64,000 nucleotides of DNA, from positions 62,001-126,000 of the IMG/VR virus record IMGVR_UViG_3300045970_000794; one strand, 5' to 3'. Of this stretch, positions 6,943-46,272 are shown one piece after another (the stretch's first letter is position 1; every line of letters begins with the position of its first letter). The notes under the pieces were generated by a model. That model ran no database searches and was not told the origin of the DNA. It worked only from the letters and a program-made list of their open reading frames with translations. The position numbers and the translations under genes are program-made.

Positions 6943-7494
6943 TTATTGTTTTTTATAAATTCCAACAAATTTACCCGCTTGGAAGAATTCAAACCCATTA
7001 GGTATATTCTTTTTAAAAAGGTAACTATATAAATCCATTCTTCGATTACTTGATGGGGTTTCACCTTTACGAGAATTATATGTTGGCTCAGCGAAAATCA
7101 TTTGAAGTGGTATATCAGCATCATTTAATTTACCAAGAGCACTAGCGATAATACTCTTAACTGTATTCATAATCATAATTACGTCACCTTTATTTGACGT
7201 ATCAGCGAATAAACCTTCATCTTCTCTAAAACTAACATCTAAATAAGCACCATTTTCATCATGATTTAAATTAAGTTTTTTAAGTAATTCCATAAGTAAA
7301 TCTATTGATACTATGTCATTAGCAATTATAACTTCAATCTTATATTCACCATGTTTTTCATTTGGTACTCTGAATTTGTATAAGAAATTAATTAAATTAC
7401 CACGAATTACATTAACTGTTTGTATGAACGGTAAACCATCACCTTCACCAAACTCTTTTAATAATGCTTCCCTTAATTTAAGTTGTATATTCAT
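6943..7494 (-). CDS. hypothetical protein
   Basis: 183-aa ORF preceded by TATTTATA motif. Confidence 0.65.
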   Translation of the reverse strand: MNIQLKLREALLKEFGEGDGLPFIQTVNVIRGNLINFLYKFRVPNEKHGEYKIEVIIANDIVSIDLLMELLKKLNLNHDENGAYLDVSFREDEGLFADTSNKGDVIMIMNTVKSIIASALGKLNDADIPLQMIFAEPTYNSRKGETPSSNRRMDLYSYLFKKNIPNGFEFFQAGKFVGIYKKQ

Positions 7495-7506
7495 AAAATA
7501 ATTTTA

Positions 7507-8670
7507 TTATAAATATCTGGTGAACTTATCAAATTCAGCATGTTCGATTGCTCTACCCATGTCTGGACCTGGTTTTATTCCTTTATCTAACATTTCATCA
7601 CCAGTAACTGATAATTTAAACTGAACAAACGCCTCAATCATTTTCATATCCAATGCATTTAATTCAGCAAATCTTATTAACTCATTAGGCTCGATTTTAG
7701 AGACTATCTCAGCTTTTTTGTATCTGAATACCAATTCTGGTTTAAAGTTAAGCATACGCAATAAAAAGACTATTTTAGATACCTCTATCCAACTATATGT
7801 TAAAGCGTTTAATGCCTTTTGAACTTCTTCTAGATTATTTTTAATTAATAGTCCAGCAATTAATACAATTGGGTCCTTTTCTTCAATAACACCAGCCATA
7901 TTAACATTTAATTTACCAAATATCCATTTAAGTAAATCATATTGTCTGTACATACCAAATAAATGAGTAATTGATTTTGCTGATTTAAATGATTTCAAAA
8001 ATTCATCCCTAATTCTCTCTGGTGAAATACCTTCCAAGCTAGAATCATTTCTTAATGCCATATCAGTAGCTTCATCAAGATTAGAACCAAATCTAGCTGC
8101 GAAACGAATCGCTCTCATGATTCTAAGTCTATCTTCACCAAATCTATCCATTGGCTTACCTACAGTTCTAACAACTCCATTTTCAATATCTTTACGCCCT
8201 TTAACCAAATCAACGATTTCACCAGTTTTAAGGTCATAGAATAACGCATTAATAGTTAAGTCACGTCTTTTCACATCTTTATTTATGTTTGTGAAATTAA
8301 CTCCATCTGGCCTACGCCCAGAACCAACATCACTACGAAAAGTTGCAATCTCAAATTCATCATTAGCAGTAAACACATTAACAACACCAAAAGCTTTACC
8401 AGTTTCTAATATATTAGTAACAAATGGTTGTCCTTTAAGTGTAGCAATAACTTGGTCTGGTGTAGCATCAGTAGCAAGGTCAAAATCTTTAGGTTCTTTT
8501 CCTAATAACGCATCCCTAACTGAACCACCAACTAGGTAAAGGTCAAATCCTTTACTAGCCATAGCGTTTCTAATTAAAATGATGTCATTAGGTACTTGGA
8601 TGTGTGTTTTCTTCCTTTGTCCTAATAACCTTTGTTTTATTCTATTAAATACTGATTCTATAATTTCCAT
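7507..8670 (-). CDS. cca: CCA-adding enzyme / tRNA nucleotidyltransferase
   Basis: LVGGSVRD...KDFDLAT...RRDLTINALFYD...EDRLRIMRAIRFAARF; start MEII at 8670 lies just downstream of a TAnnTTTG promoter. Confidence 0.9.
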   Translation of the reverse strand: MEIIESVFNRIKQRLLGQRKKTHIQVPNDIILIRNAMASKGFDLYLVGGSVRDALLGKEPKDFDLATDATPDQVIATLKGQPFVTNILETGKAFGVVNVFTANDEFEIATFRSDVGSGRRPDGVNFTNINKDVKRRDLTINALFYDLKTGEIVDLVKGRKDIENGVVRTVGKPMDRFGEDRLRIMRAIRFAARFGSNLDEATDMALRNDSSLEGISPERIRDEFLKSFKSAKSITHLFGMYRQYDLLKWIFGKLNVNMAGVIEEKDPIVLIAGLLIKNNLEEVQKALNALTYSWIEVSKIVFLLRMLNFKPELVFRYKKAEIVSKIEPNELIRFAELNALDMKMIEAFVQFKLSVTGDEMLDKGIKPGPDMGRAIEHAEFDKFTRYL

Positions 8671-8713
8671 GATATTTTTTTTTGCAAAGATACTAATTAT
8701 AATATAAATATCC

Positions 8714-8744
8714 AAAAAAAATGGCGAGAAAATTTCCCCGCCAT
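8714..8744 (-). terminator. intrinsic terminator ending the amber-tRNA/pth operon
   Basis: ATGGCG...CGCCAT hairpin plus T run. Confidence 0.6.
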
Positions 8745-8748
8745 CATT

Positions 8749-9198
8749 TTAATGATAAAATAATCCTTTTTTCACTTTAAGTATTATTCTAGCCTCCTCT
8801 ATTTGAACTTTAAGTCGTTTATATTCGGCTCTAAGTTTAATGAGCTCTTGTTCTTGGTGACTTGGTTTGATTTTAATCGTCACACCAGTGATTACACCAA
8901 TTTTAATCATTACATGGAAGAATAAATTGATTGACCTAAGGCTTTTACGTTCTAATGAAATATAAATGCGTTTAGCCATTTTTTTCTTACCGTTTTTACT
9001 CATATTATTTAATATATCACTATTAATAGGGATTGATGCAAGGTTTGCGATATTTGATTCTTCACCATTAATCATTACTACATAGTTATTTTCTTTAATA
9101 ATATCAATAATATGATATAATGCATTATCAAATGCATTCATTAAGTCTTTAGTGTTTCTATAACCTAATACTTCTTTGTTTGTTACTATAGTTTCCAT
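8749..9198 (-). CDS. hypothetical protein (downstream of TAG-containing leader ORF)
   Basis: 149-aa ORF with C-terminal coiled coil. Confidence 0.65.
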   Translation of the reverse strand: METIVTNKEVLGYRNTKDLMNAFDNALYHIIDIIKENNYVVMINGEESNIANLASIPINSDILNNMSKNGKKKMAKRIYISLERKSLRSINLFFHVMIKIGVITGVTIKIKPSHQEQELIKLRAEYKRLKVQIEEARIILKVKKGLFYH

Positions 9199-9275
9199 AA
9201 TTTAAATTTTTTATTTGTTTTTATTTTATTTTACCATGATTTTAACGTATCATGATTTGACGTTATTTTCCCGAG

Positions 9276-9326
9276 TTATAATATGGAAACTGTGGGACAT
9301 CTGATTTTAATCTATAAATCTTTCAT
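9276..9326 (-). CDS. mini leader ORF with in-frame amber: MKDL*IKIRCPTVSIL
   Basis: ATG AAA GAT TTA TAG ATT AAA ATC AGA...TAA, preceded by an A-rich initiation region. Confidence 0.6.
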
Positions 9327-9336
9327 AACTTTAATT

Positions 9337-9690
9337 TTAAATTATTTTATTATTGTATAATTTTAATGCTAATGGTAAACTGCTGCATAGTTTATCGGAA
9401 CCTTCACAAGGTTCTAAGGCAATAGCAGTTATCTCGTAACCAAGGTCTGGCTCGATGAATGTAGAATATTTAATGTTGCGATTTTCGGCTTTGGAAAGTA
9501 ATTCTTTGAGGTGTTCCTCATTACGTGCCGATAAATAAACGAGATATTTGGAATCTCGGTGCCAAATTTTGGCAACTTCTGAATGGTCATGCTGAAATTG
9601 AACGGCAGCGTGTCCCGCTTGAACTGCTTGATAGCTAGGTTCTAAATCGTCTCTGACAATTACATACATTTTTCTGTTAATCTACGTCAT
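9337..9690 (-). CDS. Pth2-like peptidyl-tRNA hydrolase with in-frame TAG at codon 3
   Basis: MT*INRKMYVIVRDDL...QAVQAGHAA...F.EPDLG..ITAIA (PTH2 motifs); upstream ATG ACG TAG ATT is in frame. Confidence 0.8.
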
Positions 9691-9732
9691 AATTTTAATT
9701 TTTAAGTTAAACAATTTTATTTATAATTTTTG

Positions 9733-9807
9733 AGACTCTAGTTGGATTCGAACCCACGCTGACGGGTTTAGAAGCCGCCGCTTTAGACCAAGCTAAGCTA
9801 TAGAGCC
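9733..9807 (-). tRNA. amber suppressor tRNA (CTA anticodon)
   Basis: GGCTCTA/TAGAGTC, D stem GCTT/AAGC, GCGGC-TTCTAAA-CCCGT, U73. Confidence 0.75.
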
Positions 9808-9820
9808 ATTTAATTTAATG

Positions 9821-9852
9821 CAAAGATAATACAAATAATTTAAATGTCCAAA
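9821..9852 (-). promoter_or_regulatory. Bacteroidota sigma70-type promoter
   Basis: TTTG-N20-TATCTTTG; similar motifs near 665-700, 8684-8716, 17892-17926, 22390-22422, 28214-28246, 29049-29082. Confidence 0.75.
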
Positions 9853-10141
9853 TATTTTTGCAGTTTTTTTAAAAAAAATCATAATAGTCTGATTATTAAT
9901 TAATAAAAAACGCTAAAATAATATAAACAAATATTAATGTATAAAGTAAAGCAGCATTTAAAAACCTATTTAAGGTTCCATAAATGCCACTTGACTTATC
10001 ATCACCACCATTAAACAACTTAAAGTTAAAAAATTGATGTGGTTTTACTATTAATGATATTATCGATTTCAATACAAACATTAAATTATTTTTTTATAAT
10101 AAATATCATCAAAATCAATAATATACAAAATAATTTATTAA

Positions 10142-10667
10142 CTACCTGTTTAAAATTTTACCAAAGCGAATTACTTTTTCTATGAATTCTTCCTCTGTAC
10201 CATTATTATCAATGATTACATCAGCACAAGATATGCCAATATTAAATGAATCAGCTGACTCTTGTTCTAATCTTTTAGATGCATCAACCCAAACAATTAA
10301 ATCAAATAACCCTTGTTTCATACATTCTTCAATTTCACCCCTATCTCTCATACCAACATAACAGTCGGCTAATTCAAGAATTCCTTTAGCTAATCTAGCT
10401 CGGTCATCTTTATTATAATCACAAATCACAAATCATATTATACCATTCAGCTCTATGATTTGACCTATCTTCGTAACATTCCTCAGATGTCTTATAATCA
10501 TACTTTTCACTTAATTCATCATAAATGAATATATCAGCAGCTGCTTGTGATGATGAGATAAACTTTAAACCAAAATTATCTCTTAAAATTTCAGCAAACG
10601 TATCTTTACCATGTCTGGCATTTCCAAGGACTAACAGCCTTGGGAACTTACTTTTTCTTGTCTTCAT
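10142..10667 (-). pseudogene. P-loop nucleotide (dNMP-type) kinase split by a 7-bp tandem duplication
   Basis: GNARHGKDT P-loop; ATTTGTG repeated near 10420-10434 separates the 82-aa and 95-aa ORFs, both containing ICD. Confidence 0.75.
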
Positions 10668-11424
10668 AAAAATCTATTTTAAATGTTTTTTTAATTAATT
10701 TATTGTTTTTAATTGCAAATACTATTGAACTTTGAGATACTCCTATGACTCTAGCAGCTTCAGCTCCAGATTCTAAAATAGTAATTTCATTTGTTATAAT
10801 GTTTTTAATCGTAACTTTTTTACTACGTAAACTAATTTGACCAATTTTAAAAGAGTTAGAATTAGATTTAAAATTTTTAGTAAAACGAGCCTCAACTAAC
10901 TCTTTAATATCGGAATTTTTTATTTCATCATGATAAAACCAAGCAATATTTTTAACTGTTTTACAATTACCAAGGCAACATTTTGGAATTACACTTCGAT
11001 GTGTTTTTAATTCTCTAGATGCATCTTCAGCACTATTAAATTCATAAACAATAACACCTTCTTTATTATAACCAATCACACTTTTAGCATTATTACCTTT
11101 CTTGAAACTAGTGTTGTTACCAAATGTACAACCATCACCACCTAATGTATTATTAACTAAATCAAATCCCCATAATTTCATTTGACTAATCCAATATTTT
11201 TCCCAAAAAACCCATTCATCTATCGGTACTACATCAATCACCCATAAAATTGGTTTTAACTCTTCATTTCTTAATGAATTAATCCAATTTCGTTTATGTG
11301 TTTGATGGTCTCTAGCTCTATTCAAATGAGCTTTATATCTTTGTGTTATATTATTCGCTTTACCAACATATCTTACATGACCAGTCCTAGGGTCAATAAG
11401 AACATAAATATTTGTCGTTTCCAT
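10648..11424 (-). CDS. GIY-YIG homing endonuclease with NUMOD1-like repeats
   Basis: NIYVLIDP...YVGKA...E.YWI...L.N; C-terminal AEAARVIGV repeats. Confidence 0.85.
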   Translation of the reverse strand: METTNIYVLIDPRTGHVRYVGKANNITQRYKAHLNRARDHQTHKRNWINSLRNEELKPILWVIDVVPIDEWVFWEKYWISQMKLWGFDLVNNTLGGDGCTFGNNTSFKKGNNAKSVIGYNKEGVIVYEFNSAEDASRELKTHRSVIPKCCLGNCKTVKNIAWFYHDEIKNSDIKELVEARFTKNFKSNSNSFKIGQISLRSKKVTIKNIITNEITILESGAEAARVIGVSQSSIVFAIKNNKLIKKTFKIDFYEDKKK

Positions 11425-11458
11425 ATTAATACATTTCTATATAAATATGGTGAAATCT

Positions 11459-11533
11459 TTAAAAAGTTACAAGCCCATGTCTTCCCGAACCAATGATAAG
11501 TAATTTAGGGAATTGTTTCTTTTCATTAACCAT
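11459..11533 (-). pseudogene. orphan N-terminus of the kinase gene (MVNEKKQFPKLLIIGSGRHG)
   Basis: Manual translation; parallels MKTRKSKFPRLLVLGNARHG downstream of the endonuclease. Confidence 0.75.
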
Positions 11534-11555
11534 TTTAATAATATTTTATTTAATT

Positions 11556-11990
11556 TTATAATCCTTGACTGCAAATACCGTAATTATACTCCAAATGAAC
11601 AGTATTATCGTCATATTGAACAGCTTTAATGTATGGTGACTCATATCCATGGCTCCTAGAATCAAAATACTCGTAATGATGCATAATATCAGATTGAATT
11701 ATCACTTGTTTTCTATTCTTAGCTAATTTACCAGATTTGGTTAATATGATATTATCATAAATCAATTGGTTGATGTCAGTATCTAAATTCATGATTTTTT
11801 CAATAAATTCAGTTTTATATCGATTAAATTCAGCTTCATTTGAAGTGAATCCTTCATCACCACCGTATTCGTTAACATCTTGGGAGTGTTTGAAGTTTTC
11901 TTCATCCCATTCTAATTGATTAACTTTATTTACTAGGGCTTCAATATCATATATAATATCTAAACCATTAATTTTAATATTTTTTTCCAT
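11556..11990 (-). CDS. hypothetical protein
   Basis: 144-aa ORF. Confidence 0.6.
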   Translation of the reverse strand: MEKNIKINGLDIIYDIEALVNKVNQLEWDEENFKHSQDVNEYGGDEGFTSNEAEFNRYKTEFIEKIMNLDTDINQLIYDNIILTKSGKLAKNRKQVIIQSDIMHHYEYFDSRSHGYESPYIKAVQYDDNTVHLEYNYGICSQGL

Positions 11991-11992
11991 AA

Positions 11993-12493
11993 TTACTTTA
12001 ATAATATTGTTATATACCCAATTGGTTCGGTACTATCATCTAAAACTTCAAAATTTGTAATTTCTTTAGTACTTTTAATTGAAAGTCTGGTTGGTATATA
12101 CCGATTAGAATCACATTCAAAACACCATTCAACTTCACAAGCAATTACTACTTCATGTACTTTACCACCAATTTTAAAGTAATCAATTGTTTCAGCACCA
12201 TCTTTATTTAATTTCTCATCACCAAACATATCATAATAACCACAAGTAAAGGCATGTGATTTTAATTGTGTAGTAATAAATTCTTCCACAGTATTAAAGA
12301 CTGGTTGAGGGCACATGACTTCTTTTGTGTTTTTATTAATTTCTTCGGCTTGCTTTTCAGCTTCTTTTTCAATACCATCAAAAATATCTAGAGTTTCAAT
12401 GAATTCATTAAATGGGCATTCAATTTTTTTATCATTGAATGCTTTTTCAATCACTTCAATACTGTATTTCTTCATAATAATTTCATTAGACAC
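11993..12493 (-). CDS. hypothetical protein
   Basis: 166-aa ORF. Confidence 0.6.
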   Translation of the reverse strand: MSNEIIMKKYSIEVIEKAFNDKKIECPFNEFIETLDIFDGIEKEAEKQAEEINKNTKEVMCPQPVFNTVEEFITTQLKSHAFTCGYYDMFGDEKLNKDGAETIDYFKIGGKVHEVVIACEVEWCFECDSNRYIPTRLSIKSTKEITNFEVLDDSTEPIGYITILLK

Positions 12494-12525
12494 AAATATA
12501 CTATAAAATTATGATAGATGCCATA

Positions 12526-13201
12526 TTATTTTAATAATTCTATCTTACCTTTTAAGATTTCTTTTAGACTCACTCTTTTACCAGTTATATGGTCAATAAC
12601 AGTATCATCTTTAACTCTATATGTTCTTCGTTTATCACCACGACACCCATTACCGATTTGTTCTCTTCTCTCATCAATTTCTTCTTCAATAACACCAGTT
12701 TGATAGAATTTATTAACCCGCTTAGTTAATTCACTTAATGCTTCTTCCCTATTTTTATGCTGGTCACGACCATCACGCACTACTTTAATACCAGTAGCAT
12801 AATGAGTCATTACAACGCATGAATCAGTAGTGTTGCGGTGCTGACCACCTTTACCACTACCTCTAATAGTTTCAATACGAATCTCAGATGGGTGTATTTC
12901 AACCATCTTATATTCATTTTTTTCTAAAATTGCTACAGTTATTGAACTTGTGTGAACTCTACCACGTTTTTCTGTTGGTGAAACTCTTTGCCATAAATGG
13001 GTGCCCGATTCTGAATTGAAAAAATCGGAGGCTTCTGGTGAGCTAAAGGCAGAAAACTATATTACTAGGTGTCTCACTTAATAATTCATATCTAAAATCG
13101 TTACGATTACACGCTTTCACGTATATTTTATATAACTCCCTAACTAATAATTTTGAATCTTCACCACCCTCGGCAGCTCTAATTTCAACTGTTGTTTTCA
13201 T
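12526..13201 (-). CDS. class I peptide chain release factor (about 224 aa) requiring a +1 frameshift at CTT-TAG-C
   Basis: Frame 0: [19 protein letters not shown]...VFCL*; +1 frame: [34 protein letters not shown]...GSGKGGQH, joining ORF 12526-12906. Confidence 0.85.
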
Positions 13202-13937
13202 AATATTTATTTTTATTTAAATTTCCAATATATTCTATACCGTTTATTATTCTTGTTGTAGCCCATAACGGACGTAAATTATTCAACGCATTTACAACAC
13301 TAGGCGGTGAATCAATTGGGAATGACGATATTGGTTTAATATGGTCAACATGCCATTCACCATGATTATCCCACGACATCCCTTCAGTAAATAGTGATTC
13401 AATATGATGTTTAAATTGGGTTGCAGAATACCCTAACAAGTCAATAGTATGACCTTCTTTAGACTTACCTAATCGTTTAAGTGTGAAGTATAATAAATCA
13501 CCCCAAATTTTACGATATGGGTGATTTTTCCTGTATTTTTGTCTATTTTCATCAATCTTACTTTTATTTAATTTTCGGTATTCTTTATCATAAGCTCGTT
13601 TCTTATCTCGATTTTCTTTAGCGTAAAGTCTATCTTTCTCTCTAACATCATCAACATTATCTAACCGATATTGTTTTTGATAATCATTTCGCTTATCCTT
13701 ATTAACTTCCCGATATTCTTTAAAATAAATATCTAACTTATCTTTATTCTTATCTCTATACTCACTGTCTTGTTTACGTTTAGAATCTAAATATGTTTCA
13801 GAATAAACAACAACATCGAAAATTTCTTCTCTCAATTTTTTTATTGTTAACCCATGTTTTTTCAAATGACTACTACTTAAATATAATAATTCGTTATCAC
13901 AAATAGGACAGACAATATAATCAACATTTTTTACCAT
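13185..13937 (-). CDS. HNH endonuclease
   Basis: FKHHIESLFTEGMSWDNHGEWHVDHIKP...NALNNLRPLW. Confidence 0.85.
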   Translation of the reverse strand: MVKNVDYIVCPICDNELLYLSSSHLKKHGLTIKKLREEIFDVVVYSETYLDSKRKQDSEYRDKNKDKLDIYFKEYREVNKDKRNDYQKQYRLDNVDDVREKDRLYAKENRDKKRAYDKEYRKLNKSKIDENRQKYRKNHPYRKIWGDLLYFTLKRLGKSKEGHTIDLLGYSATQFKHHIESLFTEGMSWDNHGEWHVDHIKPISSFPIDSPPSVVNALNNLRPLWATTRIINGIEYIGNLNKNKYYENNS

Positions 13938-13998
13938 AATTATAAATATAATGAAAAATTAAAAAACATCAATAGTAGCGAGTATTTATTTTAAAAAT

Positions 13999-14026
13999 AA
14001 AAAAAAAGGAATCCGAAGATTCCTTT
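13999..14026 (-). terminator. terminator of RNA operon 2
   Basis: AAGGAATC-ttcg-GATTCCTT plus T run. Confidence 0.8.
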
Positions 14027-14036
14027 GTAAAATGGA

Positions 14037-14089
14037 CAGGTTAGCTTTTTTTTTCTAATAAAGAGCGTTTTAATTGCTGAATGTAACCT
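14037..14089 (-). ncRNA. stem-GCAA family small RNA
   Basis: AGGTTA-CATTCAGCAA...TAACCTG. Confidence 0.6.
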
Positions 14090-14097
14090 TTACCTTG

Positions 14098-14162
14098 TAG
14101 AGGTGGATGGATATGAACCGCCAACCTGTCTTACGACCGCTCTGGACTTGAGCTACACCTCT
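14098..14162 (-). ncRNA. anticodon-less tRNA-like RNA
   Basis: AGAGGTG/CACCTCT, D arm, GTC-GTAA-GAC in place of the anticodon arm, T-like arm. Confidence 0.7.
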
Positions 14163-14173
14163 AATTGAATTGT

Positions 14174-14286
14174 TGGTGTGAAAACCTATTTCGTTCTGGT
14201 TTTTCTTTTACCCGTCATTACATCGGGACACAAATTACGTCCGTAATCGGAGACTATCCACGATTATGTTACCATAACCTTTTCAC
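14174..14286 (-). ncRNA. structured RNA closed by a 7-bp acceptor-like stem with encoded ACCA
   Basis: GTGAAAA/TTTTCAC-A-CCA; no canonical T loop. Confidence 0.4.
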
Positions 14287-14346
14287 AATTTTAACCTTGG
14301 CCTTCGGTTTCCATCGAGATTTAGATGTTTCGTAATCAACAATTTG

Positions 14347-14423
14347 TAGCGGGTCATGGGAGTCGAACCCAGTATCTCTGAGGTTATGAGCCTCGAATGA
14401 TTATTCCGTTTCACTCACCCGCA
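14347..14423 (-). tRNA. tRNA-Met(CAT), initiator-like
   Basis: 1:72 mismatch, GAGG-CTCATAA-CCTC. Confidence 0.8.
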
Positions 14424-14429
14424 ATATCG

Positions 14430-14502
14430 TGGGAAAGAAAGGAGTCGCACCTTAACTTGTATCAACCTCAGATTGTTACCAACCCTACTATACAACTTTC
14501 CC
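14430..14502 (-). ncRNA. anticodon-less tRNA-like RNA
   Basis: GGGAAAG/CTTTCCC-A, GTAT/ATAC stem with expanded loop, AAGG-TGCGACT-CCTT. Confidence 0.6.
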
Positions 14503-14515
14503 AATTTTTTTTTTG

Positions 14516-14587
14516 TAGCGGGAGTAGGACTCGAACCTACGACCTACGGGTTATGAGCCCGCCGAGCTACCACTGCTCCACCCCGCA
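14516..14587 (-). tRNA. tRNA-fMet(CAT)
   Basis: 1:72 mismatch, GCGGG-CTCATAA-CCCGT. Confidence 0.9.
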
Positions 14588-14621
14588 ATATATTTTTAGT
14601 TTAGCTATTTTCAAAAAAAGT

Positions 14622-14694
14622 GTTAAGACGGCTGGATTTGAACACAGCAACTCGGGATTTAGTCCACGCAAGATACTATTTCTATACATCTTAA
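14622..14694 (-). pseudogene. degenerate tRNA-like sequence
   Basis: TTAAGAT/GTCTTAA acceptor and GTTCAAATC T loop; aberrant anticodon loop GGA-CTAAA-TCC. Confidence 0.5.
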
Positions 14695-14726
14695 CACATA
14701 TATAAATATGCGCTAAATTGAAAAAG

Positions 14727-14798
14727 TACTCGATAGGAGAATCGAACTCCTATTTAAAGCTTGAAAAGCTTCCGTCCTAACCGTTAGACGAATCGAGC
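14727..14798 (-). tRNA. tRNA-Glu(TTC)
   Basis: Standard cloverleaf, loop TTTTCAA. Confidence 0.9.
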
Positions 14799-14806
14799 AT
14801 ATGACA

Positions 14807-14866
14807 CAGGAAAACTTTGTTTTCAAATTTTCAGATTTTGATTTTTAAGTTTGCTGAATGTTTCCT
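14807..14866 (-). ncRNA. stem-GCAA family small RNA
   Basis: AGGAAAC-ATTCAGCAA...GTTTTCCTG. Confidence 0.6.
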
Positions 14867-14882
14867 TTAGTCACTTTGTAAA

Positions 14883-14950
14883 CAGGCTAGTTACTTTAAC
14901 ACTACTGAATTTTAAATTTAGTTTGTTTTTAGTTTTGCTGAACCTAACCT
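14883..14950 (-). ncRNA. stem-GCAA family small RNA
   Basis: AGGTTAG-GTTCAGCAA...AACTAGCCTG. Confidence 0.6.
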
Positions 14951-14958
14951 TAATCCCG

Positions 14959-15051
14959 TGGCCCCCGCTGGATTTGAACCAGCACCTATCTTGCGATATG
15001 CTCTCGAATCATTTCTATAAATAGAAGTTATTCTCCTTGAGCTAGGTGACC
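14959..15051 (-). ncRNA. anticodon-less tRNA-like RNA with expanded D loop
   Basis: GGTCACC/GGGGGCC, GCTC/GAGC, TATC-GCAA-GATA, GCTGG-TTCAAAT-CCAGC. Confidence 0.7.
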
Positions 15052-15396
15052 GTGATTTTAGGGATTTTACTTATCTTACGATAGCTGTATCCATTACTGG
15101 TAACTTCATCCCTAAAATTGTGCTTCGAATTCAGTTTGACTGTAGTTCACTAGCTACCACTCATTTTATTGAGCTCACTATGAACAATTCGAAGTGTTTG
15201 TTTGTCTGGGAATCGGCACCCAGAATAGCCTACTATTCACATTTTTATTTTAACAACCCTAAGATGATTCCTTATCGGATAAGCTGGATTCTCAAATCCG
15301 ACAGTAAGGTTGCGTTAGCTAACCAATTATCATTACATTATTGCCGCTCACCATAACGGGTGAACCATAACTACATCTGCTAGACCAAACAATTTG

Positions 15397-15494
15397 TGCC
15401 CGATGGAGGACTCGCACGCTCCACTCTATCTTTCGATATACTCTAGTATCCATTATTATTATAATATGGTAGTACCACTTTAAGTTAATCGGGC
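15397..15494 (-). ncRNA. anticodon-less tRNA-like RNA with expanded D loop
   Basis: GCCCGAT/ATCGGGC, ACTT/GAGT, TATC-GAAA-GATA, GTGCGAG T-loop variant. Confidence 0.7.
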
Positions 15495-15508
15495 TTATTC
15501 AATATTTG

Positions 15509-15612
15509 TGGAGTCCGCTGGAATTGAACCAGCACTGCAATTTCTTGGCGTGCTTGAATTAATAGATTAGCTAAAAGCTTCTCATGAGTATTCTCCCTTA
15601 CACTAGGACCCC
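15509..15612 (-). ncRNA. anticodon-less tRNA-like RNA with G3:U70 acceptor
   Basis: GGGGTCC/GGACTCC-A, GTGT/GCAC, GCTGG-TTCAATT-CCAGC. Confidence 0.7.
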
Positions 15613-15780
15613 AGTTGTGACGGAATGATGATTTATAGATAATTTTACGTGCTACCTAGAAACACCAGTTTTTCACACAGACCACCCGTGAACCCCTTTA
15701 TAACGTAATCATGTTACCCACTTTTTTTAAATTCTCTCATCCGCATAGCCTTTCAGCATTTTTTCATCGGACAAATTAAT

Positions 15781-15846
15781 TAGGAAAACTGGAAGAAAAA
15801 CCCGCCGTTCAAATCTAAATTTTTACGGTTTGCAGAAATCATTCCT
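15781..15846 (-). ncRNA. stem-GCAA family small RNA
   Basis: AGGAATGATTTCTGCAAACCGTAAAAAT...TTTTCCTA. Confidence 0.55.
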
Positions 15847-15924
15847 TACACTTCTTCAAAGAACTAGTTCTTAAATTTATAAAAGTTTGTAACTTAAATA
15901 TATTTTTAGAACGAATTGACTTTG

Positions 15925-15976
15925 CAAATTTACAAACTATTTTATTAAAAAGCAAGTTTTTTTGCAATTATTTTTT
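15925..15976 (-). promoter_or_regulatory. promoter of RNA operon 2 (near-identical to 6863-6912)
   Basis: Direct comparison; one extra T. Confidence 0.75.
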
Positions 15977-16244
15977 AATTATTTTTCTTTTCATTCATTT
16001 CCAATGGTTTAACCATGATAAAAATATGGTGTCTGAGTTGGATATGGTGAAAAACTCTATCCACAGAGTAATATGGTCCATTATAATTAAAATAAACTAT
16101 ATCACCTTCATTTGGTATTAATTTTGATTTAAACCTAACTTTCAACGTTTCATGATTACCATCTTTACCAGCAATCGCAAACGTAATGATTGGCTTCCAA
16201 CTCATCAACCAATGATATGTTATTACAACCCATTTAAATAGCAT
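15975..16244 (-). CDS. hypothetical protein
   Basis: 89-aa ORF (true start may be internal). Confidence 0.5.
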   Translation of the reverse strand: MLFKWVVITYHWLMSWKPIITFAIAGKDGNHETLKVRFKSKLIPNEGDIVYFNYNGPYYSVDRVFHHIQLRHHIFIMVKPLEMNEKKNN

Positions 16245-16429
16245 TAATCTAGATTTTTTTTGGATTGAATGTAAATGGCTTTCTTTTTATTAAGCCTTTT
16301 CTTAACTGATGGTTTTTCGAAATAAACTAAACCCTTTAGTTTTTCAACTAATTTAGTTTTTTTAACCTTAACTTTGAATATTTTTAAGGCTTTATCTATA
16401 CCACCATCTTTTACTGGTATTATTAACAT
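16244..16429 (-). CDS. rpsU: ribosomal protein bS21
   Basis: IPVKDGGIDKALKIFK.KV.K...YFEKPSVKKR. Confidence 0.85.
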   Translation of the reverse strand: MLIIPVKDGGIDKALKIFKVKVKKTKLVEKLKGLVYFEKPSVKKRLNKKKAIYIQSKKNLD

Positions 16430-16433
16430 ACGT

Positions 16434-17036
16434 TTATTTATTTAATTTACTCGTTATTTTTCGTAGTAATCTATCAGTTGAAGTGATTTGAGGAAGAACA
16501 TCAATCATATCACCACCATTAAATATGATGATATCAGATTTAGCCATTTTTTCATCATCACTCATCTGATTTGAGATTCTATCCATTATTTCAACCTCAC
16601 TTAATGTACCTCTAGTCACTGCCCGCTTAATTCTAAGTTCAAGTGGGCAATATACTGTAATAATAAAATCAAAATTAGACTCACCATTAGTTTCAAATAA
16701 TATTGCAGATTCACATAAAATATATGGTGATGTTTGTTCATTAACCCATTCTTCAAATTTTTGACGAAGAACTGGTAATATTATTAAATGTAATTCACTT
16801 AACTTTGATTTATCATTAAACATGATACTACTTATTTTTTTTACATTTATTTTATCAAATTCATCATAAATATCTTCACCAAAAAGTGCCTTAACTTTTA
16901 ATTTCACATCTAACACATCATAACAAGCCTTAGCCTCAATGTCTGTATTATATATTGGAATACCCAAATTATTGAATTTTCGGCAAACATATGATTTACC
17001 ACACCCAATACCGCCAGTAATTGCTACTTTTATCAT
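16434..17036 (-). CDS. coaE: dephospho-CoA kinase
   Basis: KVAITGGIGCGKS...IYNTD...ESAILFE...KSDIII.N. Confidence 0.9.
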   Translation of the reverse strand: MIKVAITGGIGCGKSYVCRKFNNLGIPIYNTDIEAKACYDVLDVKLKVKALFGEDIYDEFDKINVKKISSIMFNDKSKLSELHLIILPVLRQKFEEWVNEQTSPYILCESAILFETNGESNFDFIITVYCPLELRIKRAVTRGTLSEVEIMDRISNQMSDDEKMAKSDIIIFNGGDMIDVLPQITSTDRLLRKITSKLNK

Positions 17037-17038
17037 AA

Positions 17039-17878
17039 TTAATCAAATAAAATTTTACTAATAGGTTGAATAGCCTTTTTATGTTTAAATTTATACTTAT
17101 TATTCCCAAGTAATTGAATTATCTCAAGACCCAGATTGGAAGCTTTAACCGTATCCTCATAAACAACAAACTCAGTAGCACTATGCCAATCATAATATCC
17201 AGCAAACAAATTCATACAATTAAAATCAAAACTGCGTTTAATCGCAAATACATCGGTAAATGGGTCAGTATCTCGAATATTAGAAATACCATATCTTAAT
17301 AATATTGGGTCAACTAGTTTAAAGAACTCTCTATTAAATAGTTGCGTCCTATTTGAAACATATGATAACCAATCAGAACCTGGTGCATCAAATTCAATCG
17401 CATATCCAACACTATTGAATATATCAACATCAGCATTTCTGGAGCCAAGACAACCAATTTCTTCACCTTTAAAAAATGCACCAATAATATTATCAGTTTT
17501 ACTTATTATATCTAAACAAATTGCTATACCAGCTTTATCATCACCGCCAACACCAGTAATAGAATCTATACCTTGTTTTAATGGGTTCAGTGCCGTTAAA
17601 ATAGTTTTATTTTTATAAAATTTTTCATTGATTTTTAATTTTACATCTTTTTCAACCAGCTCACGATGCTCTTGAACGGTATCCATATGTGCAATCACAC
17701 ATGGGAAATACTCACCTTCACCAACTTTACCTTTTTTAAGATAAACATTACCATATGAATCAAGAATTACTGGTATAGAATTTTTAACTCCCCAAGAAAT
17801 TAAAAAATCAATCATCCGTTTTTCATAGTTATAAACGGTTGGAACTGCTAGTACTTCTTTCAATAATTCTATGTCCAT
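17039..17878 (-). CDS. M20/M28/M42-clan zinc peptidase-like protein
   Basis: AHMDTV...GGDDKAGI...EEIGCLGS...EFD...YYDWHSATE. Confidence 0.75.
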   Translation of the reverse strand: MDIELLKEVLAVPTVYNYEKRMIDFLISWGVKNSIPVILDSYGNVYLKKGKVGEGEYFPCVIAHMDTVQEHRELVEKDVKLKINEKFYKNKTILTALNPLKQGIDSITGVGGDDKAGIAICLDIISKTDNIIGAFFKGEEIGCLGSRNADVDIFNSVGYAIEFDAPGSDWLSYVSNRTQLFNREFFKLVDPILLRYGISNIRDTDPFTDVFAIKRSFDFNCMNLFAGYYDWHSATEFVVYEDTVKASNLGLEIIQLLGNNKYKFKHKKAIQPISKILFD

Positions 17879-17995
17879 AATTTAATTTTTATGCAAAGAT
17901 ATGTAAATTATATGTAAAAACCAAATATTAAAGTATTTATTTTAAAATAAAACTCATTATATTGAAATAATAACAATTATTAAAAAACATTAATT

Positions 17996-18145
17996 ATGTA
18001 TCTATTCGGATGTGGATGTGGTAAAAAGAGAGATAATGTAAGGACTAGACCACAGGTAACTAAACCTGTTCAAACCCCTACACCTCCACCAACTAATCCA
18101 CCTAAAACAAACCAATCAAACGGCTACCAAGGTCAAGGTAGTTAA
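17996..18145 (+). CDS. small protein with GCGCGKK motif and Pro/Thr-rich tail (49 aa)
   Basis: Manual translation MYLFGCGCGKKRDNVRTRPQVTKPVQTPTPPP...; followed by a terminator at 18148-18174. Confidence 0.6.
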   Translation: MYLFGCGCGKKRDNVRTRPQVTKPVQTPTPPPTNPPKTNQSNGYQGQGS

Positions 18146-18176
18146 AATAAAAAGCCAGATTACTCTGGCTTTTTCG

Positions 18177-18755
18177 TCAATAATTAATTGAACATTTGCG
18201 GTCTTCCCAATAATCATGTATTATTTTACAAAAATCAAGCATTTCTTGATGAGTCATATTATTTTTAGTATGATTAGCACTTATACTAATAAATTGAATA
18301 TTTCCTTTAATGTACCCTTTTTTAGAATCAATTCTGTCTAATGAAGCGGTATTATTATAATTGCAACCACATTCATTTTTTCGATTGGATTTATGTTTTA
18401 ATTCAACACCAGTATAAACACATAAACCTTTTTGTGAAGTCCACTGAGTTAATAAATCATCTAGGGTTATTGTACATTCAATATTTTTTTCTTTTTGTCT
18501 AATTTTTATACGTCTTAGATATTCTCTAAATTTAGTATATTCATCACATTTAATAATCTTTAAATTTTCATTGTGTTGACCATAGAAATTTTTTAATACT
18601 TCATAATAGGTTGCACTACAATTTAAAGAACAAAAATTTTTCCTACCAATTTTATTATTGCGTCTAACTTCAGAACCATCTTTCATAAATTTAGACCCAC
18701 ATTTTTCACAAATAACTTCAATTTGTGGTCGTTGATATTTCTTTTTATTTTCCAT
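18177..18755 (-). CDS. HNH-like endonuclease
   Basis: CEKC...CSLNC; CVYTG...ASLDRIDSKKGYIKGNIQFI...N..K. Confidence 0.8.
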   Translation of the reverse strand: MENKKKYQRPQIEVICEKCGSKFMKDGSEVRRNNKIGRKNFCSLNCSATYYEVLKNFYGQHNENLKIIKCDEYTKFREYLRRIKIRQKEKNIECTITLDDLLTQWTSQKGLCVYTGVELKHKSNRKNECGCNYNNTASLDRIDSKKGYIKGNIQFISISANHTKNNMTHQEMLDFCKIIHDYWEDRKCSINY

Positions 18756-18950
18756 AATAATAAATATCCCCACAATATAAAAACGCCCAGCTCCACGTGT
18801 CATAAAATAAAAAAAGTGCCATTGGCACTTTTCATATTAATATAAACCAAAATGTTAGTTTATCATAAAAGTAATAGTTTGTTAGTATTTAGTCGAATTT
18901 ATTCAATTCGTGTAGTGCATACCACGTACAGGTAACTAACCTAATGCACC

Positions 18951-19364
18951 TGGAGTTGGAGGGTAATGAACCCTCGTCTTACGAGCTCTTCAATAATATT
19001 CTACATGCTTAGGATTAAGTTTTCTTACTTACCAAAAATATTTAGTTGATTTATGTCACGGTTCAACTACTAAAACCGAGTGTTAATTAGACACCGACAC
19101 TACGGTGCTTTTTTTGTCATTCTTACTCTACTTACACTAAACTAAGTAAAGACTCAGCTTAATGTCATTGAGCAATGACCCGTCTGGCTTCAGTTAGGCA
19201 GCCATCGCCTCTCCAGCAAAAACACCACATGTGGCGTTTGCAAGGAAGTTTTCGTCAACAGATAATTCGTTGCCAGTTACTATTTTGATAGGTTTTTAAG
19301 TGTTTCCATCTAACACTGCATGCTAATTATTTACGACTACACGTAATCTAATCATTTCAACCCC
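18951..19364 (-). ncRNA. ssrA: tmRNA
   Basis: 5' GGGGTTG / 3' CAACTCC-A with G3:U70, T arm GAGGG-TTCATTA-CCCTC, tag ORF 19274-19194 ending AA*. Confidence 0.9.
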
Positions 19365-19412
19365 GTGTTCTGATAAATATAGCGATTTATCAGAAAATGT
19401 AAAGAACGTTAA

Positions 19413-20078
19413 TTATATTTTCTTTTTTGAAACAACAATTTCATCAATGATACCATAATCCTTTGCCTCAACAGCTGTTAACCATTTATCTCTAGTTGCA
19501 TCAGCTTTAACTTCATCAGCAGTTTTACAACAAGCATCACCTAAAATACCGAAAAGAATATCATTGTATTTTTTAGTTTCAGACATTGTAATTTCCATAT
19601 CTTGAATATTACCAACAGCACCAGCAGATACTTGATGTAACATTACTTTACTATAACGTAAACTAGAACGTTTTCCTTTAGTACCTTTAGCCAATAAAAT
19701 TGAACCCATAGATGCGCACATACCAGTATTAACTGTTACTATATCACATTCAATTATATCCATAACATCAACAATTGAAAGTCCAGATTTAACACATCCA
19801 CCTGGTGTATCAATATGCATTCTAATGTCTCTCTTTTCTTGATTATCCATAAACATTAATTGAGCTTGAATAATACTAGCCATAATCTCATCAACAGGTC
19901 TGGCAATCCAAATAATTCTATCCATCATTAACCTAGAAAAAATATCCATTTGGGTTACCCTTAATTGTCTTTCTTCTAGAATATAAGGTGTCATGGAATT
20001 CTCATATCGATATAGATTCAACCCAGAAATACCAGCATGCTTAGTAGCATATTTTTTAAATTCATCGTGTTCACTCAT
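19413..20078 (-). CDS. clpP: ATP-dependent Clp protease proteolytic subunit
   Basis: DIFSRLMMDRII...IDTPGG...CASMGS...MLHQ...RDKWLTAVEAKDYGIID. Confidence 0.95.
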   Translation of the reverse strand: MSEHDEFKKYATKHAGISGLNLYRYENSMTPYILEERQLRVTQMDIFSRLMMDRIIWIARPVDEIMASIIQAQLMFMDNQEKRDIRMHIDTPGGCVKSGLSIVDVMDIIECDIVTVNTGMCASMGSILLAKGTKGKRSSLRYSKVMLHQVSAGAVGNIQDMEITMSETKKYNDILFGILGDACCKTADEVKADATRDKWLTAVEAKDYGIIDEIVVSKKKI

Positions 20079-20880: not shown

Positions 20881-21912
20881 TTATTTCCCTTTGTCCACTA
20901 ATTTCTTCATTTTTTTTAAAATTTCTTTATATTCACTTGAAATATTCTTCGGAACTTCTATACTAGTAACCACATACAAGTCACCTCTACCTTGATTACC
21001 TCTAATATTTAATCCTTTACCTTGTAATCTAAATTGTCTATCAATATCAGTACCCTCTGGTATGTTAATTTTAACAATCGAGCCATCAATGGTTGGAACT
21101 TCAATATCAGAACCCAAAACTAATTCATAATATTTAGCTTTATACTTATAAATTAAGTTATTTTCACTCCTAATGAAGATATCATGAGGTAATTCTTCAA
21201 TTAAAATGTGTAAATCACCAGGTTTATCACCTTTTCTAATTTCACTTCCCCCACCATTAGAAACAAATGTATCACCATTAATTAAACCACACGGTAAATC
21301 AAACTCAAACTCAACTTCATTCATTAACGTACCAGACCCACCACATTTTTCACATGGTTTTAGTATAATTTCACCCTCACCACCACAACTTCTACATACA
21401 AAACTTTGATGTATAATACCCATTGCCGATTGTTGAACTATTGTTTCCATACCACTTCCATTACACACTGTACATGACTTAAAATCACCGCCAGTTCCAT
21501 GACATGAATCACACTTAATTAACCTATTATATTTAATAGTCTTATGTGTACCATTGTGAATATCCTCTAGTGTTAGACTAACTTTAACTCTAAGCGTTTG
21601 TCCAACCCTAATATTACGTTGTTGACGATTTCTACCCATGAATTGATTAATAATATTATGAATATCAACGTTTGATGCGTTATTTTGATGTCCTCTTACG
21701 GAACCAGTAGTATCAAACATTTGTTTCTTTTCTGGGTCAGATAGAACTGAATATGCATCAGAAATCTCTTTGAATTTTTCTTCAGCTTCTTTATTATCTA
21801 GATTTTTATCTGGATGATATTGAAAAGCCTTTTTCCTGTAAGATTTTTTAATTTCTTCGTCAGTTGCATTTCTTTCAACACCTAAAATAGCATAATAATC
21901 TTTATTTTCCAT
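20881..21912 (-). CDS. dnaJ: DnaJ chaperone
   Basis: J domain with HPD; four CxxCxGxG repeats; C-terminal domain. Confidence 0.95.
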
Positions 21913-45986: not shown

Positions 45987-46272
45987 ATAAATCTATATCA
46001 TTAGGTTTTTTATTATTTTCAATCTTAATTTCTACTATAGGTATAATTTCTTCTACCTTTAATTCTTCTATAGGTTCCTCCATAGGTTCCTCTATTGGTT
46101 CTATTACCTCTTCTGGTATAGGTATAGTAATGTTTGGTGTATTACCATATTTTTCAATGGCAAATGCAGTCCTTATAAGCTTATATATGAAATTTTCAAC
46201 GTTTTCAATATCATTTAACTTACAATACTCACTAATTTCATCATATACATTACTCTTTATCTCCATTTTCAT
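45976..46272 (-). CDS. hypothetical protein
   Basis: 98 aa with EEP repeats. Confidence 0.55.
   Translation of the reverse strand: MKMEIKSNVYDEISEYCKLNDIENVENFIYKLIRTAFAIEKYGNTPNITIPIPEEVIEPIEEPMEEPIEELKVEEIIPIVEIKIENNKKPNDIDLYGE

Follow-up and report, generated by a model that had tools for sequence, protein, structure and literature searches.

A stretch of giant-phage DNA carries an amber (UAG-reading) suppressor tRNA gene next to two short reading frames in which translation would begin and then meet an in-frame UAG within a few codons, an arrangement conserved in other large phages, including cultured ones. The arrangement probably represents programmed amber read-through, in which the phage's own tRNA(CUA) seems to act as a switch for specific genes and not as a change of genetic code. 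This reading, in which we have fair confidence, rests on comparative evidence only; that read-through occurs, and its regulatory character, remain inferences.

Results

Organization of the locus

The window, meaning the whole 64-kb stretch analysed, comprises bases 62,001-126,000 of a 362,102-bp viral contig (IMGVR_UViG_3300045970_000794, JGI Ga0485187_0000003). It has about 30% G+C, and nearly all of its genes are on the minus strand. The region is rich in translation functions, with at least 13 tRNA genes, a tmRNA (18950-19364), a CCA-adding enzyme (7507-8670), a 126-aa GGQ/RF-1-domain protein (12526-12906), bS21, ClpP and DnaJ. The features of interest form one transcription unit on the minus strand:

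9852-9821, minus strand: Bacteroidota-type promoter, TTTGG-N19-TAtcTTTG
9807-9732, minus strand: amber suppressor tRNA gene, anticodon CUA, class I, without encoded CCA
9690-9670, minus strand: amber leader of the PTH2-like gene, ATG ACG TAG ATT AAC AGA AAA, with the TAG at 9684-9682
9690-9337, minus strand: PTH2-like ORF read through the TAG (117 codons plus stop); an alternative start, ATG 9669-9667, gives 110 aa
9326-9276, minus strand: amber mini-ORF (uORF), ATG AAA GAT TTA TAG ATT AAA ATC AGA ... TAA, with the TAG at 9314-9312 and the TAA at 9278-9276
9198-8749, minus strand: 149-aa gene of unknown function (family Y)
8745-8720, minus strand: intrinsic terminator, an 11-bp stem followed by a T run

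The promoter assignment is based on consensus only. The pattern TTTGN{18,22}TANNTTTG matches 8 times in the window, and the seven matches on the minus strand all lie just upstream of genes, with the next one after this unit at 8716-8685. This suggests, by inference, a Bacteroidota host.

The tRNA was detected by ARAGORN and by Rfam (RF00005, 51.2 bits against a gathering score of 29). Its anticodon loop is U-U-CUA-A-A, with three stem irregularities: a C.C mismatch at 31-39, a mismatch in the T stem, and G2.U71. The closest relative, locus L005, has the same arrangement and a tRNA with a higher score (65 bits). ARAGORN labels the gene tRNA-Pyl, but this label follows from the anticodon alone. 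The atypical tRNAPyl architecture would be expected to include a very small D loop, no G18G19 or T-psi-C, a 3-nt variable loop and a long anticodon stem, while here the D loop is 11 nt with GG, the T loop is TTCGAAT, the variable loop is 4 nt and the anticodon stem has at most 5 bp with a mismatch; the structure is that of an ordinary class I tRNA. No ribozyme family appears among the Rfam matches at E<=0.1 in positions 1-20000 of the window, which would exclude a theta/HDV-like ribozyme beside the tRNA only if Rfam 15 holds the theta subfamily.

The PTH2-like protein matches Pfam PF01981 (40.6-43.2 bits against a cut-off of 23), with an E value of 3e-10 from ATG 9669 and 5e-11 when the four codons after the TAG are included. 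In the latter case the match starts at profile position 2, on a conserved Lys encoded upstream of 9669. A family profile also hits solved Pth2 structures (1rzw, E 6e-9; 2zv3, 2e-7; 1q7s, 5e-6). However, in the alignment to AF2095 the Gly-Lys of the G-K-x-A-x-Q motif aligns with G-Y, and the Asp of D-A-G with the invariant Glu73; what is likely the catalytic Lys of archaeal Pth2 thus appears replaced by Tyr, so the substrate of the enzyme is uncertain.

An earlier note on this DNA had pointed to the recurrence of the TAG-ATT-AA context. All the features it described are present, but the repeat of TAGATTAA is not significant by itself, as this 8-mer occurs 16 times in the window against 9.5 expected and 3 of 100 shuffles reach 16. 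What makes the pattern non-random is its conservation in other phages.

The amber leader of the PTH2-like gene is conserved

The closest database homologs seemed to have Gln where the window has TAG. Inspection of their DNA showed that this Q is itself a TAG, translated by gene callers with code 15, and not a real Gln. To investigate the leader further, we scanned IMG/VR with a 12-sequence alignment and analysed the best 80 of 193 confirmed hits, many from contigs of 100-500 kb; the frequency of the arrangement in more distant PTH2-like genes may therefore differ. Of 60 non-identical genes, 58 have an ATG, 0-6 codons, and then a TAG lying in frame 2-8 codons before the conserved K-L-x-V-I-x-R-x-D. 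Leader lengths differ by whole codons, so the frame is always kept. Only 3 of the 58 have an ATG, GTG or TTG between the TAG and the domain, and only the window has an ATG there. The same leader is found in ENA/Logan contigs.

The base after the TAG is a purine in 57/58 genes, against 24/43 for terminal TAGs of long ORFs in the same DNA (Fisher, p 7e-8); a 3' purine is probably the classical context favouring amber suppression in E. coli (Bossi; Miller and Albertini). In lineages that use Shine-Dalgarno (SD) sequences, the SD lies 6-8 nt before the ATG that precedes the TAG, as seen in loci L051, L053, L058, L075, L091 and L103, and in phages XacN1 and fHe-Yen9-04.

The main alternative is that translation starts only downstream of the TAG, at ATG 9669 here and by termination-reinitiation at near-cognate AUU, AUA or GUG elsewhere, the ATG-x-TAG element being a coupling or minigene element without involvement of the suppressor tRNA. 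The internal ATG of the window is compatible with this view, as are the 41/58 leaders with AUU, AUA or AUC after the TAG, which can act as weak starts; two- and three-codon minigenes also appear to be linked to Pth in phage lambda (bar). On the other hand, 17/58 leaders have GUA, GUU, CUU, AGC, AAC or GGC after the TAG, none of which initiates. The codon after the TAG is ATT in 37 genes, GTA/GTT in 13 and ATA/ATC in 4 (54/58 together), an Ile/Val alternation that points to amino-acid-level selection and fits elongation, not initiation. Notably, the stop is always TAG, never TAA or TGA. We consider this explanation unlikely, although in this particular phage PTH2 could be made from ATG 9669 without suppression. 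The earlier note proposed this ATG as an alternative start; being peculiar to this phage (1 of 58), it is a possible bypass here and not the general start.

A suppressor tRNA is linked to the leader

ARAGORN finds a tRNA(CUA) within 3 kb, always on the same strand, in 66 of the 80 loci, either about 70-85 nt upstream of the leader or 0.4-3 kb downstream, and sometimes duplicated; the other 14 loci show none within 3 kb. This linkage also speaks against simple reinitiation. The 60 distinct tRNAs are diverse in their stems, but 54/60 have the loop C/U-U-CUA-A-A, and their anticodon stems are more often unpaired at the ends than those of neighbouring tRNAs. The U73 mentioned in the earlier note is not conserved, since the discriminator varies among relatives (A most often, also G and U), and a Cys-like identity has no support. 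The short variable loop excludes Ser, Leu and bacterial Tyr types, but BLAST against phage and E. coli genomes and a nearest-tRNA comparison gave nothing usable on the inserted amino acid.

The second amber codon lies in a conserved uORF

The mini-ORF is in frame neither with PTH2 nor with the 149-aa gene; it is a separate uORF, and not the start of the 149-aa gene. By tblastn, the 149-aa protein has homologs in at least 13 loci beside PTH2 or tRNA(CUA), and nearly every one has an amber mini-ORF 77-183 nt upstream; the element recurs in 13 lineages with the post-TAG consensus I-(K/R)-(I-R)-x-P-P-stop. Peptides encoded before and after the TAG include:

window: MKDL-TAG-IKIRCPTVSIL
L005: MKDT-TAG-VIRGPT
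L055: MKDT-TAG-IRGP
L036: MKNT-TAG-IRIRNPP
five lineages: MF/MS/ML-TAG-IKPP, MY-TAG-VKPP, MI-TAG-MLKPP
L050: MK-TAG-IKITIRGPTYLF
L049: MKH-TAG-IHIRSP..
L010: M-TAG-IRIRSPGG..

In these upstream regions 13 of 18 TAG mini-ORFs carry the K/R-x-P motif, against only 1 of 24 TAA/TGA mini-ORFs, although TAA trinucleotides are four times commoner. Conservation of the peptide after the TAG is hard to explain unless it is translated, and it is a further argument against the reinitiation model. No common RNA structure was found between the uORF and the 149-aa gene.

For the 149-aa protein itself, we found no Pfam or PHROG family and no k-mer homologs; 1 of the 13 family members gives a marginal PHROG match (phrog_28995, E 0.0066). 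Its AlphaFold2 model is confident (mean pLDDT 86.5), but has no PDB fold match at E<=0.001.

Conservation of both TAG elements across dozens of lineages, spanning 23-50% G+C and several host phyla, contradicts as a general account the idea that the features are decaying or accidental (a nonsense mutation in PTH2 rescued by a new start, an inert mini-ORF and a degenerate tRNA). For this phage alone, the three mismatches and lower score of the tRNA, the unique internal ATG, and the abundance of TAGATTAA in AT-rich DNA could be read that way, but we regard it as very unlikely.

Other amber-led genes and cultured phages

A domain of about 190 aa (X; motif H..HDCGKPYC..RRHFPDH) lies just upstream of PTH2 with its own amber leader in several phages, and is fused to PTH2 in others. 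Its only structural match was a marginal PDB hit to the body of an A-adding enzyme (E 0.04). Remarkably, homing-endonuclease ORFs inserted next to PTH2 are fused in frame to a duplicated amber leader plus about 20 PTH2 codons in 6 of 6 cases. Within the window, further candidates at 46001 (upstream of the SbcC-like gene), 46284 and 16407 look like chance, the last lying out of frame inside the bS21 gene.

The family is almost absent from cellular genomes, with 9 loci in 185,579 species genomes, mostly mis-binned huge-phage contigs. Of the eight non-duplicate loci checked, seven have the leader and seven have a nearby tRNA(CUA), the exceptions being different loci.

Among cultured phages, XacN1, Xoo-sp13 and Stenotrophomonas CM1 have ATG AAG (AAG) TAG A.. 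in frame with an X-PTH2 fusion, and the XacN1 authors reported two CUA suppressor tRNAs without an identifiable target (PMC5852040). GAP32 and fHe-Yen9-04 have M-A-Q-TAG-N-E-K and M-S-H-TAG-I-D-K leaders, respectively, on the PTH2-like gene, and a TAG about 45 codons into the X gene, where reinitiation would truncate the domain; both genes are annotated only as fragments. GAP32 has an annotated Sup-tRNA with anticodon CTA 2.3 kb downstream. Cluster C mycobacteriophages have ATG TAG GTG (ScottMcG, Cane17) or GTG TAG GTG (Myrna) before the annotated start, with a tRNA(CUA) 130-300 nt downstream. Here, however, the SD spacing favours the GTG immediately after the TAG (1 nt to ATG, 7 nt to GTG), so the TAG may lie in the spacer and this case is ambiguous.

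The sampled DNA reads as standard code

A third possibility is that the phage recodes TAG as a sense codon (code 15 type) in late genes elsewhere in its genome, the two TAGs being merely part of that recoding. Phage-encoded tRNA(CUA) is the hallmark of TAG-recoded phages, in which recoding is concentrated in late genes (Borges et al., preprint), and gene callers chose code 15 for several relatives. However, the window, 10 kb beyond its right end (L003) and a further 10 kb from a near-identical 45.9-kb Logan contig (L097) contain no long ORF interrupted by TAG. These approximately 84 kb, about 23% of the genome, include at least 12 large baseplate-region and structural-like genes (baseplate-region genes of up to 1,378 aa) and replication genes, with gp32, DnaB and RNR among the genes covered. 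In the window, stop-to-stop ORFs of at least 100 codons total 59.9 kb in code 11, and 7 of 66 minus-strand genes end in TAG. Backup stops after TAG-terminated genes show only a weak trend (median 5 against 8 codons, p 0.045, n 7).

A general sense codon would be scattered, yet the 60 PTH2 ORFs, with 6,693 codons and 391 CAA/CAG, include none of typical length (99-127 codons) cut short by an extra TAG, the only TAG being at the fixed leader position. TAG is therefore not a general Gln codon in these genes. Relatives show no local excess of TAG-bridged ORFs over TGA/TAA controls, and cultured carriers are annotated and propagated in standard code. On the DNA sampled, hidden recoding seems improbable, in agreement with the earlier note, which had proposed regulatory read-through rather than genome-wide recoding.

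Discussion

The previous analysis leads to the hypothesis of a translational gate. Mechanistically, ribosomes would start at ATG 9690 and meet UAG at codon 3; if mature, charged tRNA(CUA) outcompetes RF1, they would read on and make the full PTH2-like protein, and otherwise a dipeptide would be released. The uORF at 9326 would work in the same manner, its short conserved peptide, I-K/R-..-P-(P), being translated only after read-through. We infer that this peptide slows or arrests the ribosome and so sets expression of the 149-aa gene about 80-130 nt downstream. Output of both genes would therefore track suppressor activity. In this phage, the ATG at 9669 and the imperfect tRNA may indicate that the PTH2 gate is partly relaxed or bypassed.

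The purpose is likewise inferred. Since the phage also encodes tmRNA, an ArfB-like GGQ protein, ClpP and a CCA-adding enzyme, we tentatively favour a feed-forward or homeostatic coupling of peptidyl-tRNA and ribosome-rescue functions to the level of stop-codon suppression, or feedback on the suppressor itself, although a simple timer is also possible.

The arrangement shares its effector with code-15 phages (crAss-like, Lak and others), where a phage suppressor tRNA has been proposed to time late-gene expression; there, many TAGs are scattered through late genes and coding density collapses in code 11, while here one TAG lies at codons 2-8 of one to three specific small gene families, or in a uORF, next to the tRNA. 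In prfB (RF2) autoregulation an early in-frame UGA senses decoding versus termination capacity, through +1 frameshifting and with the gene's own product as effector; here the ORF continues in frame 0 in all 58 relatives and a dedicated tRNA would be the effector. The Pro-Pro-stop or R-G-P ending of the uORF peptide seems to resemble arrest or slow-termination leader peptides (SecM, ApdA/ApdP, TnaC), but it is only 4-16 residues long and becomes translatable only after amber read-through. The lambda bar minigenes are, as far as can be judged, not in frame with a downstream gene and act by sequestering tRNA, whereas the in-frame relation to PTH2 is conserved here. Synthetic amber-suppressor AND gates (supD tRNA plus amber-containing T7 RNA polymerase) would similarly require both a target mRNA and a suppressor tRNA, and the present system would be a natural counterpart. 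We found no description of an amber-led PTH2 gene in the open-access literature searched (PMC and bioRxiv, without subscription journals).

Many cultured and uncultured large phages that use the standard code nevertheless carry tRNA(CUA), and no target has been known; the XacN1 authors searched for read-through at gene ends and found none (PMC5852040). Our analysis points instead to specific, conserved targets at gene starts. It also matters for annotation, as these genes are currently truncated, fragmented or translated with the wrong code (GAP32_397-399; the Q in database proteins), and it suggests a natural suppressor-tRNA gate and a candidate amber-dependent arrest peptide that may interest synthetic biology. 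A broader reading is possible, although we hold it with less than even confidence: amber suppressor tRNAs of many standard-code large phages would not be relics or precursors of code change, but the trans-acting component of a natural translational switch whose dedicated targets are amber codons at the very start of a small regulon (the PTH2-like gene, the X domain and the Y-gene uORF), the uORF being an amber-dependent arrest peptide. This would be a new class of gene regulation in which a virus-encoded tRNA is the regulator, and would also explain orphan suppressor tRNAs such as those of XacN1, GAP32 and Bxz1-type phages. Finally, the arrangement offers an intermediate state between standard code and full TAG reassignment.

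Variation of the amber device among relatives

The two relatives without the TAG leader are loci L088 (3001-3030) and L062 (about 3600). In L088, a TGA is found nine codons into the PTH2 domain, while L062 presents a tRNA(UUA) 600 nt downstream and no tRNA(CUA), raising the possibility that both are analogous devices using other stop codons. Comparison of the 60 unique tRNA(CUA) from the fetched loci revealed that the suppressor tRNAs often have shortened anticodon stems: pair 31-39 is unpaired in 21/60, against 13/68 in other tRNAs, and pair 27-43 is unpaired in 17/60, against 3/68.

A domain of about 190 aa (H..HDCGKPYC..RRHFPDH), which gave no Pfam hit, is either amber-led and adjacent to PTH2 or fused to it on either side (loci L053, 2391-2984, L058 and L075; L066, 3001-3900; L096, 2437-3303). 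Its only structural indication is a marginal PDB hit to the body of an A-adding tRNA nucleotidyltransferase (E 0.04).

Within the window, ATG ATA TAG ATT TAT ATG (45993-46001, minus strand) lies in frame just upstream of the 785-aa SbcC-like gene, inside the end of the preceding gene. Although it has the same TAG-ATT context, this occurrence is probably due to chance.

Gene content around the suppressor-tRNA unit

The surroundings of the unit include the following elements of the window, in order of position:

3129-6648 and 14515-15051, minus strand: tRNA array
10142-10667, minus strand: nucleotide-kinase-like gene, apparently split
10648-11424, minus strand: GIY-YIG/NUMOD homing endonuclease gene
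12526-12906, minus strand: 126-aa RF-1/GGQ-domain protein
16244-16429, minus strand: ribosomal protein bS21
16434-17036: dephospho-CoA kinase gene
18950-19364, minus strand: tmRNA
19413-20078, minus strand: ClpP protease gene
20881-21912: DnaJ gene

The tRNA array includes unusually long predictions (87-94 nt: Asn, Trp and 'Tyr(ata)') together with several weak tRNA-like hits detected only by Rfam (3129-3207, 3352-3431, 3986-4066 and 5761-5842), which may be intron-containing or degenerate tRNAs. The nucleotide-kinase-like gene appears divided into two overlapping ORFs (10667-10419 and 10429-10142) at a short tandem repeat, AATCACAAATCACAAATCA, and its 5' ORF has a 77%-identical DNA match to a phage deoxynucleoside monophosphate kinase. 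The split could reflect a frameshift, a sequencing error or a programmed shift. The GIY-YIG/NUMOD homing endonuclease gene sits between this kinase-like gene and the suppressor-tRNA unit.

Functions linked to translation and protein turnover are also encoded in the region. The phage carries its own ribosomal protein bS21 (PF01165, E 1.6e-12), directly after the dephospho-CoA kinase gene. The 126-aa protein consists only of the RF-1/GGQ domain (PF00472, E 4e-24) and looks like an ArfB-type ribosome rescue factor, that is, one independent of the stop codon. In addition, the phage-encoded tmRNA (Rfam 72.6 bits) lies next to the ClpP protease gene (Pfam E 3e-51) and, taken together with the DnaJ gene, these elements look like a tagging-and-degradation module carried by the phage.

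Homing endonucleases fused to the amber leader

Homing-endonuclease ORFs, either of the DUF723/DUF4379 zinc-finger type or HNH+NUMOD3, were found in loci L014 (1763), L024 (1968), L029 (1972), L027 (1930), L046 (2166) and L090 (2212). Notably, these ORFs are fused in frame to a duplicated amber leader plus about 20 codons of PTH2, immediately upstream of the intact PTH2 gene, and the endonucleases may borrow the gated start.
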